From positions 542,966 through 606,965 of the forward strand of contig NW_005434646.1 of assembly GCF_000315625.1 (NCBI RefSeq): 64,000 nucleotides of DNA, given 5' to 3'. The stretch is from Guillardia theta CCMP2712. Its lineage: Eukaryota > Protista > Cryptophyta. Below the pieces are notes generated by a model that saw nothing but the letters and a program-made list of their open reading frames with translations, searched no databases and had not been told where the DNA came from. Position 1 is the first letter of the stretch; the number at the start of each line of letters is the position of its first letter. This document shows, in pieces, positions 714 through 8,235 of the stretch. The position numbers and the translations under genes were made by a program.

Positions 714-1904
714 TCACCCCAACCGTTGAACTCTGCCACGACTAGAATGATATTGGCGTCGGGTGAGCAGGGCACAGAGTAACATCAATGCTGTTCCACC
801 TGCAACACGGTACCTCAACAATTCAGAGTTTCCTTGATGTTGTTCACCTTCCTGTTCACCTGGATTGGAAGGCTCTTCGTCAGCCTGATCATGTGGTGTA
901 AAAATCTGGTGAAGGACTGAGGTTTGCAAAACTTTTTCGGTTTCTTTGAATGTGTTCATGTTTTTGTCTGCTAACATTCGTTTGACCTGCGTTCTCATCA
1001 AAACAACACTTCTTCTGTTTTGCTGACTGATTTTCGAACGATGCAGAAATGAGTAACTCGATTTATCCTGTATGAGGAAGAACATTATGATGATAGATAT
1101 TGTAAGCAATGCCCTTGATAAAAACCTGTTCCCTCGTCTAACAATTGTGAGCAGCCCTGCACCGGGAATAACAAAGCAACAACGAATTACAGCCAGAAGT
1201 ACTGTGACAAAAAAGTTTATGCAGATTAGTGCGTACCAATTCGAAAGTAGAATCATAAAGCATGTTTTTGTCCATTCCTTCGCGATGAAGTTCAAAAAGT
1301 AGAACAGAATGGTAAATGATAAAAACATTTTTGATCGAAGCGCTCGGTACGAAAGTATCAAAAAAGCTCGTACCACACGGTTATTTACAAATGGACTCCA
1401 GATATTAGACGATGCAAATTCCGCCCAACTTTCGATATAACAGTCGATGCGTCCTTTGATCAAGTGATCTACGATTGAAGTGAAAAACGATCCACTTTTT
1501 CTCATACCAACTGTACCAGCAAGATCTGTGAAATCCAGGAGATCGCTTATTTGAATGCGAGCTCTCGTCAACTCTTCTCTCTCCACGTCATGCCATACTG
1601 CAAATGCTTCAGTTGCATCCAGCCACTTTACAACTACGAGGTCGTTAACCTGTGGAGTAAAATCCTTCAGGCAAGAAAATTTGAAATGCATCTTCTTTCG
1701 CCTGCCTAGATCAATGAAACCACATGATTTGTGAACAGATACAATCTTCCCATAAGATGTTGAAAGGTATTGATTCATTACATCATTGTACCTCGACTCT
1801 CCGATTACACCCGCAGCTCGTAACGATTGCAACCGTTCGACATCGTGGAGGCGGCGACAATCTTCCGGAGATTTACATAACCAATAAAGCCACCTTTTCG
1901 ACAT
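714..1904 (-). CDS. Hypothetical multi-pass membrane protein with N-terminal SHOCT-like helix pair and cold-shock/OB-like domain
   Basis: 421-codon open frame; first ATG at 1904 (MSKRWLYWLC). ERLQSLRAAGVIGESRYNDVM is SHOCT-like. GKIV...GFIDLGRRKKMHF...PQVNDLVVV is homologous to a segment of the neighbouring kinase. It is followed by 3-4 hydrophobic stretches. Exact start and end are uncertain. Confidence 0.7.
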   Translation of the reverse strand: MSKRWLYWLCKSPEDCRRLHDVERLQSLRAAGVIGESRYNDVMNQYLSTSYGKIVSVHKSCGFIDLGRRKKMHFKFSCLKDFTPQVNDLVVVKWLDATEAFAVWHDVEREELTRARIQISDLLDFTDLAGTVGMRKSGSFFTSIVDHLIKGRIDCYIESWAEFASSNIWSPFVNNRVVRAFLILSYRALRSKMFLSFTILFYFLNFIAKEWTKTCFMILLSNWYALICINFFVTVLLAVIRCCFVIPGAGLLTIVRRGNRFLSRALLTISIIIMFFLIQDKSSYSFLHRSKISQQNRRSVVLMRTQVKRMLADKNMNTFKETEKVLQTSVLHQIFTPHDQADEEPSNPGEQEGEQHQGNSELLRYRVAGGTALMLLCALLTRRQYHSSRGRVQRLG

Positions 1905-2318
1905 GAGATATGAAAAAATGATCAAATTATGCTCTTCATGGTGGAAATTGATCCTTGTCCAAACTTGTACACCAATCAAACAATGATATTACTGAAAGAC
2001 TTGAAATTCTGAGTTTTAATGCTCCGTGCGGGTTGGAGTCACATCCTTTGCGGCATGGCAAGAAAGATTTCGCTGTCCTGCATTTCAACACGAATCTCTC
2101 AGACCACCACCCCCGTATTGAGGGTACCACCCTCCCTTCATGCGCAACAAGACCAGATTTGCTGAGTACCCCCTGTGCCGAAGTTCTCTACCCCACCAAT
2201 CGACATGGAGTCACTGCCCTTCTCTTTCACAGCCCATCTGTTCACGGTGACCCCACCCCTGCTTGTTTGCAATTCCTAGCTCAGCGAGGATAGCAGCGGG
2301 GCACGTGAGGTGGACGAC

Positions 2319-5150
2319 ATGGCAAGGTATGTTTGACGAGATGATGGTATAGTCGCTCATTTGACAATACTTTTCCGCAGTAATCCTGCTCCAAAAGAAG
2401 GAAACTCCTTTTTCTCACGGTTCTACAACATGTATCAAGGAATGTTTTCTCCTATGGATGAAACAAGCACACAAGACACAAAAGCCCCGTCAGAGCGGGA
2501 GCAGGCTGAACAGCTTCTCAAGGAGGGAAAGATCAGCGAGAGCCTGTACAAGCAGATGATATCAGCCATAGAGACCCGCAGCAAGAGCAAGGATGCTATC
2601 TCCGAGCGGGAGCAGGCTGAACAGCTTCTCAAGGAGGGAAAGATCAGCGAGAGCCTGTACAAGCAGATGATATCAGCCATAGAGACCCGCAGCAAGAGCA
2701 AGGATGCTATCTCCGAGCGGGAGCAGGCTGAACAGCTTCTCAAGGAGGGAAAGATCAGCGAGAGCCTGTACAAGCAGATGATATCAGCCATAGAGACCCG
2801 CAGCAAGAGCAAGGATGCTATCTCCGAGCGGGAGCAGGCTGAACAGCTTCTCAAGGAGGGAAAGATCAGCGAGAGCCTGTACAAGCAGATGATATCAGCC
2901 ATAGAGACCCGCAGCAAGAGCAAGGATGCTATCTCCGAGCGGGAGCAGGCTGAACAGCTTCTCAAGGAGGGAAAGATCAGCGAGAGCCTGTACAAGCAGA
3001 TGATATCAGCCATAGAGACCCGCAGCAAGAGCAAGGATGCTATCTCCGAGCGGGAAACAAGCACAATGCCTGGAAAGATTGTAGGATTGAAAGGTAACAA
3101 AGGTCTTATTGACGTCGGCCGACGACACAAAATGACATTCACCCTTTCCAAGTGCTATGATCATCCAAAAATCAATGACCTCGTGATAGTTCATGTTCTT
3201 CGTGAAAATGACGATTATCAAGTCGTAGAGGTGTCGCGGGATGTTGCCAGGGAAGACATTCGACTTGCTGCAGATGAAATTTTTCGTCTGACTGATGGTG
3301 CAATCCAAGTCGATTACACAAGCTTGGATATGAGAAGTATGCAGAATTTATTGCATGAAGTCAAAAAAATTACTGTTGAAGAACGGAAGCGCCGTGATAC
3401 TGCTATTAGGCACAAATTGAAAGCGCTGAAATATGCACATTGTGCACAGGTGGTTTTTTTGATGGACTGTACAGGCTCCATGCAGTCGTACATCAACGCA
3501 GCCAAGGTTGGCATCAGAAAAATTCAGAGAACCATTATTGAAGCAATACCGAATGGAAACGTCAACTTCAGTTTTGTTGGTTACCGAGATTATGGCGATC
3601 CTGAGGTTATCACCCTGCCATTCACCTCTGATGCCAATCGGTTTGAGGAGCACCTTTCAACTGTTGTAGCCGATGGAGGTGCAGACCAATGCGAAGACGT
3701 TTACTCTGGACTCGTCAAAGTTTGTGATCTCACGTGGGACGGACAGATTCCATCCAAGATAATATTTCATATTGCTGATGCACCAACACATGGAACATTC
3801 TTTGCCGGAGGATACTCGTTCAGCGATAGCTATCCACATTTCGACTCTGATGGCTCAAAAACTAAGGCAGTTTTGAGGAAAATGGTTGTGGAACTTGGAT
3901 TGAATTACATTTTTTTGCGAATCAATTACTCGACAGACGAAATGATTAAAACATACAACACCCTGCTGGACACGCTGTCCATCAGTGAAGTCGACAAAAT
4001 AGAGACCCATGAACTTGAAAGAGCTGAGGATATCATTGAGATCGTCATGAAGAGTACGGTGGACTCGGTATCAAGCGCAGTGAAGGACAGTTTGACCGAA
4101 TTGGGCATGAAAGACCACCGTGCTGAATACTTTGATCGTTTGCGGAAATCAATTGAAAGTCACTACAAGCGATCCCCGGTCAAGTCGAAGGAGCGACCTG
4201 TTGTGTCATCAGTCCTGAAGCTGGAACCCTCAGTACTTGGGCGACTGGAAGGTGTTGCAGAAGAAACAGAAGAATTGAGTGATGACGAAGAAATCTCTAC
4301 TACTTTCCCTCGTGTTGGAGATCGAGTCGAATCGAATCCAAGTGCACAGTACGTGGAGGTTTTTGCGTGTGTGATGCCAAAGACTATGGACGATTTGAAA
4401 TCTACGCTTTCGCTGACAACATCCAAAGTTAGAGCATTTGAGATTGAACTCAATCCCAGCAGATTCTTTGCAAAGGGGGGTGTTCGAAGTGTCACCTTTG
4501 CTCGTGATGTTTCAGATGGCAGTGAATTGCACTTTGATGAAGAAGCTGACGGAATATTCGCAAGTCCAACAAGACAATTTGTTTTCAAAGTGCATCAGAG
4601 ATTTATTGATCCTGAAATGGATAAAATCAACACCAAAGACGATCTTCAATCAATTACCATCGCAGCATTTCTTGCCCAAGAATTCTGCAAAAATCCCTCC
4701 GTGGGAAAAAAGATCGAGTACCTCAAGTCCATGGCAGTGAAGTTCAAGAATTCTGATGGAATCATCAGACACGCAACCATCGAATCGATTCTAGAAGGTG
4801 ATTTCATCAAATGGAGCAACAATGCAGATTACATGAAAGCTGAGGAAGATAAGGACTTCTCGGCAACCTTGTCTGCATTCACTCATTGGACTTATGAGAT
4901 TACAAAGGGATATCTCATGATTGTAGATGTTCAAGGCATCAAGTCCCCATCAGGAGAAGAATTCATTCTCACAGATCCTGCGATTCATTGCAAGAATACA
5001 GATAGATTTGGAGGAACAAATCTTGGAGTTGAAGGCATGAATCTCTTCTTCTCGAAACACAAGTGCAACAGCATGTGTAGGGCGCTCAAGCTGCTTCCGC
5101 ATTCAGCCTGCCCTGGGTTTTCAGAGCATGGTACTCTTCCTGTAGTTTGA
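2319..5150 (+). CDS. vWA domain + alpha-kinase (eEF2K/MHCK family, VwkA-like architecture) with N-terminal SHOCT-like repeats and a cold-shock-like domain
   Basis: ATG at 2319 and a GT-AG intron 2327-2380 join in frame (MASNPAPK...). vWA motifs: VFLMDCTGSM, FVGYRDY, GGADQCEDV, HIADAPTHG. Alpha-kinase motifs: FAKGGVR, FIKWSNN, AFTHWTY, IVDVQG, LTDPAIH, GGTNLG, and the Zn site HKCNSMC. Confidence 0.93.
2490..3055 (+). repeat. Coding tandem repeat, 5 x 111 bp (37 aa) plus a partial copy
   Basis: Units start at 2490, 2601, 2712, 2823, 2934 and (partial) 3045. Each encodes SEREQAEQLLKEGKISESLYKQMISAIETRSKSKDAI and the copies are essentially identical. Confidence 0.98.
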
Positions 5151-6232
5151 TTTGAGCCTCTGTTTCCTGAGTTCAATTCTCAAATATACGGTTATGTCGA
5201 CATGAAGTGAAGGTATCAGTTTTTAAGCCTGGCAAGTTTGGGGGACAGCAGTCCGGCACGCTCTCTTTTCTCTTCTCGCCGTTTGGCCTGCACAGTGACA
5301 GTGTCAGGGTCAAGCCTCCTCGACTCACCCAGGCTCCTGATTGTCCTCCGGCGTACTGATTTTTAACTTAACTTTGAGTAAACGTTGCCGTCGGATCATA
5401 TGTTGCCAGTGAATGTTACTGAGTCTTTGTCCTGATCAGCCTTGTTCCCCTGCTTGTCCGATCGTGCATACTGTCGCTTGCGTGACGGTTGGAGTAGCGG
5501 TTTTCGCTGCCTCCTCCGTTTCCTAGTGTTTTGTTGAGGCGGGTTCAAGTTGTAGGCTTTATCCTCCGTCCTCGGGATTCGGGCCGTCGCCTCAAAGTTT
5601 TCCCGCCAGGGCCGCCGCTTCACTTTCGATCATGAGGGGGATGATGGGGCCGTTCTAATACGAATGGCCATCGGTCAACCAACCCCACCCTCTGATCCCA
5701 CCCCCACCCCTGACTTAAAGAACTAAAGACCGTACCCACCGTCGCACAAAGTTTTCTGTCCATACCAGGGGTACTCACATATTTCATTTTTCCTAGTGGA
5801 TAACTCGAGGAAATTATCCGGATTGCTCTATCAATCCCATTTGGCATCACCCCTACCCCTCCATGAAGTACCTTACCCCTAGTCAATCACCCTTCATTGG
5901 GGAGGACGGCAGCAATGCTGCGACGCCGCTTGGCTGCTAACTGAGGTAAGATGAAGAGAGATTCGAAGATGAATGGAGGACATGGGGAATGTAGGAGAGG
6001 AGAGAGACAGAGGAGAGATAGGAGCAGCGGAAGCCAGATACGAACGATCCTTGTGGCTCTTTGCGGTGTGTGTTCAGCATGCCAGGTTGCAAGAGTCTTT
6101 GTCTGATAGCATTTTGATGCTAGTGAAGTGTGATGAGTTGTTTGTCTGAACAAGTTAATGGTCAAACAGGTTTCTTAGTAATAAACAGGGCTGGGTTTTT
6201 CGGTTTTCAACGAGATCTGGGCAGCTCTTACC

Positions 6233-8235
6233 ATGGTGGTCAAAAAGGCAGCTGAAGATGAAGAAGCTTACATCGCGCCCCTCCCCTACTTCCCTGATCT
6301 CAAGGTCATCTCTTGTCAAATATCTTGGAGCCTTCACTGAATCCTTTCCCAGCATGCAAAGTTAGCACGGGAGAAGGATAGCAGCCCCCCGGGCATCAAT
6401 AACTACCATACCACATTTCTGCTCGTCGTCCAGATTCTTCTTTGTATTCTGTATGGACTAACAGTACAGCAAGATAAATTCCCAAAGCAGCAATTGCCCG
6501 ACCCGGGGGAACTGGAGAACCCGGACCGGATTGATCAGGTGCCTCCCTTCAAGAGGTATCCCCCTGGCTTCGACATATTTCTAGGTACCGCAAGGATGTC
6601 AGAATTCAAAGTCCAGGAGCACTACAGCAGTTTCATGCAGATTTCCATCTTTGTGTTTGTTGGGTTGCCCTGGTCTTTCTCTTTCTTGCGACGATATGCG
6701 TACAGCGCAGTTGGCTTCGGTCTGGTCTCAGCCTGCGTTGCGACTCAGATTGGAATCGTGTCGATGCAAGTGGTTGACCGCATTCACTGCAGCTACCTCA
6801 AGGATATGTTGAGGGCTCCGGACTTTAGCCTCAACAAGATCCCTTTGACGCCTTGCCCTGACTACGCCGGGCCCAACAGCGGTGGGTTGCCTTGTCGCGA
6901 CTCGTTCGTCTACACGTGCAAGTGGACGAGCCCGACGCAGAGGTGGACGGCGCCTCCTCTAGATGAGATTCAGGATGACTTTGGGGCCAGACAACTGAGA
7001 CAAGCTTGCTATTGTGATCTTTGGGACAGAATCGTCCAGAACAAAACGTTGGCAATTTTGCAGCCAAGGCTTGCGCACCAAGCTTTGTTGGTCACGGGAC
7101 ATCAAGACTTCAATAAGATCTCTTTTTCACTATCCTTCATGAACGTGATTGATGGAATTTATGCAACTGTGCCAGTCATGATCAGCTTTGGAGTGGTCCT
7201 TGGAAAGATGACCCCGATTCAACTTGTACCTTTTGGAATCCTCAATGTGGTAGCTTATGCGTTTAATCTGTGGGTCTGCACTTACGTCATCGGAGCGTGG
7301 GATCACACTGGCGGTTGTTGTGTCAATCATATCTTCGGAGCTTGCTTCGGAATCGCTGCATCTGCCATTTCTTACACGAAGGGAAGTGAAACAAGCGAGA
7401 ATTGTCGGTCACGCTATCACATGGACATTCTGTCGCTCTTTGGCACGATGCTCCTGTGGGTTACTTACCCTTCGTATAACAACTTCTATGCTCCATCCTT
7501 CGCTCAGCAGGCAGTTGCTGTAAACACTTTCCTTGCAGTCTTGGCAAGTGCAGTTGCTTCACTCCTCTACTCTGCCTTGTTCCATCCGAAATTCAAGCTC
7601 ACCATCACAGACACGCAGCGATCAGTCATTGCCGGAGGTGTCGCCATGTCCTCGAATGCCAACCTTGTCAGCGACCCTTGGGTTGCGCTTCTTATCGGAG
7701 GGCTGGGAGGCATGGCTTGCTGTTTCGGCGTTCACAGAGCGCGACGTTTCTGGCAACAGAACCTTCAAACCCACGACACGGTGAGCGACTGACGACGTGT
7801 AGAAACAAAGAGACTGAACCTATACTTGACCAGGTTGGTGTCACGAGCATGCATCTGTATCCAGGAATCATCGGCTGGCTGGCTGGAATCATTCTCTTCT
7901 CTCCTAATTGGCCGGGTTACTTGAATGCCAATGCCATTTACGGGGATCTGCAGAGCTCTAGATACAAGTATCACCTCCAGCTAGATCAGATCCTAAACCA
8001 TAACAAGGGCAACGGAGACGCCATGAGAGCACAGATCTACATCGGCCCGATGTCTGTCGCCACTGGGCTCGTCACTGGGACTCTTGCTGGACTGATCGCT
8101 ATCAAGATCAACAGGCTTGAGTTCAAGTCGATGTACCTCGACGACTACTTCTTCTCAGTCCCGGATGACTTCTACACAACCAAAGTCGAGAAGTCGGGCG
8201 AGGACAACCTTGACGACGGGACCGTGGAAGTTTAG
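6233..8235 (+). CDS. Rhesus (Rh)-type member of the Amt/Mep/Rh ammonium/gas channel family
   Basis: ATG at 6233; introns 6305-6352 and 7781-7833 (probably another near 6540-6616). Rh motifs: FSFLRRYAYSAVGF, ISFGVVLGKMTP, DHTGGCCVNHIFGACFG, SLFGTMLLWVTYPSYN, AGGVAM, HDTVGVTSMHLYPGIIG. Both pore histidines are present. Confidence 0.9.

Follow-up and report, generated by a model that had tools for sequence, protein, structure and literature searches.

In plants, sensor and executor NLR proteins can be encoded head to head by divergent, paralogous neighbours that have an N-terminal module in common. In animals, the slot of RNA-linked phosphorylation control is filled by PKR. The closest described relatives of the kinase presented here are the vWFa alpha-kinases of Dictyostelium, in which, as in our gene, a vWA domain is followed by a C-terminal alpha-kinase domain, and whose member VwkA exerts its effects on myosin II and on contractile vacuoles (PMC2827801). 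Unlike our kinase, VwkA is credited in that review with neither a hairpin nor a cold-shock domain (PMC2827801).

The stretch of DNA analysed here (64 kb, hereafter the window) contains a divergent pair of ORFs, at 714–1904 on the minus and 2430–5150 on the plus strand, and both frames are present and open. A preliminary description of this DNA proposed that the two genes share a single module and nothing else. This was confirmed, as the proteins align over ∼110 aa (41/119 identities, 34%, E 4e-11) and no other region is alignable. Its count of 21 identities in 41 core positions was reproduced when recounted on the alignment. The features of the locus are as follows.

714–1904, minus strand: membrane-type gene, 396 aa, intronless (ORF and probable RNA contigs)
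765–821, minus strand: C-terminal segment of moderate hydrophobicity, with basic residues behind it (Kyte-Doolittle, KD, 1.52)
1068–1340, minus strand: hydrophobic block with three to four predicted membrane helices (KD peaks 1.29, 2.47 and 2.08; hydropathy only)
1533–1586, minus strand: helix past the barrel, with the kinase's first linker helix as its homologue (alignment and AlphaFold2)
1590–1763, minus strand: cold-shock/S1-like OB barrel with aromatics at three of four RNP1/RNP2 surface positions (profile, AlphaFold2, structure matches)
1767–1853, minus strand: two-helix hairpin with central G-x-I, one copy (AlphaFold2 helices 2–14 and 20–30)
2073–2325, no strand: candidate bidirectional promoter gap, free of RNA-type contigs, ∼250 bp
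2319–2380, plus strand: possible first exon of 8 nt (ATG 2319) with a 54-nt GT-AG intron at 2327–2380 (in-frame splice)
2430–5150, plus strand: vWA-alpha-kinase gene, 906 aa (925 if spliced) (ORF, Pfam, AlphaFold2)
2493–3055, plus strand: 111-bp unit repeated 5.1 times in tandem, with copies that are 100% identical and encode one hairpin each (repeat analysis)
3054–3239, plus strand: cold-shock/S1-like barrel with none of the four RNP surface aromatics (AlphaFold2)
3243–3437, plus strand: linker helices and long stalk helix (AlphaFold2 helices 103–118 and 132–167)
3441–4109, plus strand: vWA domain with MIDAS variant DxTxS and the Asp of ADAP (Pfam, alignment, AlphaFold2)
4335–5096, plus strand: alpha-kinase domain (Pfam, alignment)

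The two C-terminal domains first recognised in the plus gene are well supported by Pfam (VWA_4, E 6e-12; Alpha_kinase, PF02816, E 2e-40, with 139 bits against a cut-off of 21.3). In the alignment, the kinase retains the catalytic Lys, two Asp, the Gly-rich loop, the DxQG, TDP and GxxNLG motifs and the zinc ligands; a conserved Gln of helix C is replaced by Ile. With a vWA domain N-terminal to a terminal alpha-kinase domain, the predicted product conforms to the VwkA type in domain order. The closest other vWA domain in the genome lies at the end of a long helicase-like ORF (L004, G000:C50:455436-456023). Instead of the single hairpin initially assumed, the kinase carries five, encoded by 111-bp copies that are identical at the DNA level. 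The GC3 of these repeats is 0.76, compared with 0.36–0.46 elsewhere in the same gene.

AlphaFold2 (13 sequences) models the shared module with a pLDDT of 90 as a hairpin of two helices, a five-stranded barrel and one further helix. The closest structures are the S1-like domain of DBC1 (Z 9.4) and the cold-shock domains of Unr (Z 9.2), followed by NusA S1 and Lin28. The best PDB sequence matches of the module profile, again Unr cold-shock domains, are weak (E 0.013), and the Pfam gathering scores for CSD and S1 are missed (best S1-like match 15.1 bits vs 25.2, E 0.02). The barrel and the structural matches uphold the suggestion that the module adopts a cold-shock/OB fold. Mapping of RNP1 and RNP2 as defined in PMC5624153, in a register taken from a weak profile match, places aromatics at three of four surface positions in the membrane protein and at none of four in the kinase. 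This suggests a division of labour, in which the aromatic RNA-binding face was kept by the membrane protein and lost by this kinase. Two other kinases, P0036 and P0039, also have none of the four aromatics and no module-bearing neighbour; loss of the RNA face thus needs no partner, which weakens the argument from complementarity. The hairpin is SHOCT-like in shape only, as the best profile match (E 0.25, 11.6 bits) stays below the cut-off of 27. The oligomerising role derived from it fares no better, since the paper that defines SHOCT states that its own experiments do not support oligomerisation (PMC3581485).

No third copy of the module was found in this genome (87.1 Mb, 669 contigs), where the sole weak match is an ordinary S1-domain protein. 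The ten closest kinases (35–44% identity) have the module wherever the N-terminus is complete, and the number of hairpins ranges from 0 to 5 across relatives. The module is what proteins of one vWA-alpha-kinase clade usually have at their N-terminus, where 0–5 hairpins precede a cold-shock/S1 barrel that is followed by a stalk. Module-bearing kinases form a single clade (support 100), separate from the vWA-kinases of moss and green algae. One member additionally contains a KH domain and another CCCH fingers, fusions that hint at an RNA context. P0001 has a membrane hairpin between helical repeats that is unrelated to the minus protein. P0020, a further member, consists of two hairpins, another domain of ∼250 aa and then a hairpin and barrel, and apparently ends before the vWA domain. 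Scans of IMG/VR returned stand-alone vWA genes or nothing, and prokaryote genomes gave no match.

Two family members lie on intronless, gene-dense contigs of 27–29% GC, one of which also reaches a NADAR gene and the gene of a divergent second subunit of RNA polymerase. Matches of this subunit in a viral collection (31–32% identity) include a giant-virus MAG. Based on the low GC, the lack of introns, the gene density, the NADAR gene and the polymerase matches, these contigs appear giant-virus-like. Both carry a kinase-less vWA paralog directly upstream of the kinase, and the kinases themselves are devoid of the hairpin. On the giant-virus-like contigs, in L138:1444-4350, L128:2-2973 and L029:82-2988, the vWA paralog and the cold-shock-vWA-alpha-kinase are followed by a small convergent membrane ORF; L138 additionally encodes NADAR, a kinase with an EF-hand match and the RNA polymerase subunit.

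The minus protein comprises, in order, the hairpin, the cold-shock domain, a helix, the hydrophobic block, a polar/acidic stretch and the C-terminal hydrophobic segment, which may be tail-anchor-like. The transmembrane helices expected past the module are thereby recovered as three to four hydrophobic segments plus the C-terminal one, as judged by Kyte-Doolittle hydropathy only. Past the module, its frame contains no stop over 270 codons, compared with 10–21 stops in the other five frames (chance ∼3e-8). Probable RNA contigs from three studies span most of 662–2072, and both flanks are empty. We conclude that the minus gene is real and old, and probably transcribed. The whole protein had no match in a word-indexed protein search or the Atlas, and beyond the module its sequence occurs only once in the genome and has no detectable relative elsewhere.

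A counterpart emerged when 1.84 billion proteins were searched with a profile. Among its five matches is P0021, a protein of 422 aa from Hanusia phi that has the layout of the minus protein (hairpin, barrel, helix, hydrophobic block, polar stretch and C-terminal hydrophobic segment), with the last segment (KD 1.62) in the corresponding position. Searched against this genome, P0021 matches the minus gene best. A profile of the minus protein and the modules found only P0010. In trees, the modules of the minus protein and P0021 group with supports of 100/97 and 100/98, a grouping that is good but not final, given short module alignments and a long Hanusia branch. Trees that unite the window's two modules are rejected (p-AU 0.015 and 0.003); if Hanusia is left out, the two are sisters (90/87). 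Both membrane-type modules fall into a subclade with the window kinase, P0004 and the virus-like kinases. On these trees, the module copy in the minus gene predates the split from Hanusia. Past the module, the minus protein and P0021 show no significant similarity, which would mean that the two membrane proteins evolve fast or are related by something other than strict orthology.

Between the window's two modules, identity at the three codon positions is 0.50/0.62/0.33, values that are somewhat biased by the protein-guided alignment. This is the pattern expected of an old duplication under protein-level selection. The kinase family has the module as its own N-terminus, so that a local inverted duplication is enough to account for the common module as well as for the divergent arrangement. 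We therefore infer that the minus gene is an old local inverted partial duplicate of the kinase N-terminus, placed on an unrelated membrane-type C-terminus. There is no sign of carriage by a transposon, as no terminal repeats were found around the locus. The fourfold-site GC of the locus is 0.31–0.43, against 0.48–0.64 in the nearest genes; this hints at a foreign origin, but two other ORFs of the window are equally low (0.36 and 0.39) and we do not claim a transfer.

The gap of 415 bp given for the two genes is correct (414 bp between ATGs) only if the kinase starts at ATG 2319 and the 54-nt intron is used; from ATG 2430 it is 525 bp. The splice from ATG 2319 is in frame, yet the only contig across the intron (2326–2484) is unspliced. 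Read mapping covered 150–2600 of the window, and five raw reads terminate at 1932, which may be a minus-strand start, or the reads may be duplicates. Both genes were detected together in the same three probable RNA runs from three studies, at similar and low depth, although the RNA status of the runs is an automatic guess and they form no condition series. The 111-bp repeat unit of the kinase is present in the same three runs and its 5′ end in one.

The surroundings show several further features. Just past the kinase, 5205–5386 and 5424–5573 belong to two dispersed repeat families with many genomic copies each (75–87% identity), possibly small non-autonomous elements. Between the end of the minus gene and an upstream DEAD-box-like gene lies a GC-rich patch (340–620) with inverted repeats (447–461/560–574) and no cover by RNA-type contigs. 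Split ORFs at 6494–8235 resemble, by eye, an ammonium transporter. On the minus strand, 24180–61911 is taken up by a very large gene of Cys-rich repeats, in which the internal cassettes are near-identical and a coiled coil forms the tail.

If the pair were a system, it could be expected to recur as divergent kinase and membrane protein genes, a test put forward in the preliminary description. This was not observed: none of seven other kinase loci has a module-bearing partner within the available upstream DNA (0.6–2.4 kb each, beyond which a partner would escape). These loci (L035 and L137, one cluster; L036; L028; L029/L138 and L128, one lineage; L038) represent five independent cases, none of them a known cryptophyte. 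At the CCCH-type kinases, the divergent upstream genes resemble methyltransferases. The searches returned no kinase from Hanusia, perhaps owing to an incomplete transcriptome. Overall, the interpretation first given is supported with respect to the OB fold and the real, old minus gene, and is not supported with respect to SHOCT oligomerisation or to recurrence at the loci with upstream DNA.

A functional partnership of the two genes is thus close to an even bet, though slightly short of it. It is favoured by the lasting adjacency, the ∼250-bp common gap and the complementary RNA-binding faces, whereas origin alone would explain the adjacency. Our main reading, to which we assign a probability of roughly 45%, is a split receptor, in which the membrane protein, bound to RNA at an internal membrane, would recruit the kinase via the shared module. 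Here, the membrane protein, with its RNA-binding face kept, would tether single-stranded RNA or a ribonucleoprotein at the membrane. The kinase, having lost the face and multiplied its hairpins, would be recruited through the module and might phosphorylate a translation or RNA-turnover factor. A short common promoter would keep both genes co-expressed.

Alternatively, the two genes may be independent functional paralogs, the duplicate being a membrane RNA-binding protein with a role of its own and the adjacency a relic of the inverted duplication. We take this to be a serious possibility, albeit one that we would not favour. The failure of the pair to recur, a Hanusia membrane protein found without a kinase and a family that functions elsewhere without a partner all fit it; an adjacency that outlasted saturation of synonymous sites, the complementary RNP faces and the similar low transcript depth do not. 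It is improbable that the membrane gene is instead a decoy or inhibitor, which titrates the partners of the kinase's hairpins or barrel (or a viral kinase copy) and does not activate the kinase. A module without a catalytic part, the truncated vWA-only paralog directly upstream of the kinase on the virus-like contigs and the fast divergence from the Hanusia protein would suit such a role, but the virus-like kinases have no hairpin. The preliminary description itself named decay of an inverted partial duplicate as the outcome that would undo it. The empty word-indexed search and a region past the module without detectable relatives are compatible with decay. Against this, the long open frame, the probable transcripts, the Hanusia counterpart and third positions that are saturated while second positions are kept largely refute it, and we regard it as very improbable.

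Whether the split receptor would belong to a defence system is a separate matter. Defence is suggested by the copies on virus-like DNA, by a repeat number that varies and by the fast divergence, and we consider an antiviral role unlikely. We are similarly sceptical of a wider scenario, in which protists in conflict with viruses would use an RNA-sensing alpha-kinase pathway: a membrane cold-shock protein would detect RNA and recruit the kinase via hairpins, and giant viruses would subvert or exploit the pathway with a kinase copy and a vWA paralog that lacks the kinase part.

Among known systems, the module shares its five-stranded barrel with Unr/CSDE1, Lin28, CspB and the S1-like domain of DBC1/CCAR2 (Z 8–9.4, rmsd ∼2 Å). 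It differs from cold-shock/S1 domains in scoring below the Pfam cut-offs, in not keeping the H29 position and in its hairpin and helix flanks. The RNP1-like motif of cold-shock domains is present in the membrane protein, and the face is fully degenerate in the kinase. The hairpin resembles SHOCT (PF09851) in its ∼30 aa and two helices around a conserved Gly; it is N-terminal in all members and also occurs in tandem, whereas SHOCT is C-terminal. eEF2K, ALPK1 and TRPM6/7, which match the plus kinase with E 1e-18 to 1e-10, also join an alpha-kinase to accessory sensor or membrane parts. Unlike the window pair, they hold the sensor or channel in cis and contain neither a vWA nor a cold-shock domain. 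The layout is that of the plant NLR pairs, but there is no NLR/STAND domain and no conserved pairing at the seven other loci, and our pair is known from sequence and probable transcripts.

Taken as a whole, the kinase belongs to the vWA-alpha-kinase family. What appears new is its cold-shock-bearing subfamily and the membrane offshoot, on neither of which a literature search retrieved a paper. The KH and CCCH fusions and the giant-virus-like copies point to RNA-linked phosphorylation control in protists. Without a partnership, the subfamily would remain a novelty at the level of annotation; if the membrane paralog is a partner, a cultured alga would possess an RNA-sensing kinase that is split over two proteins.
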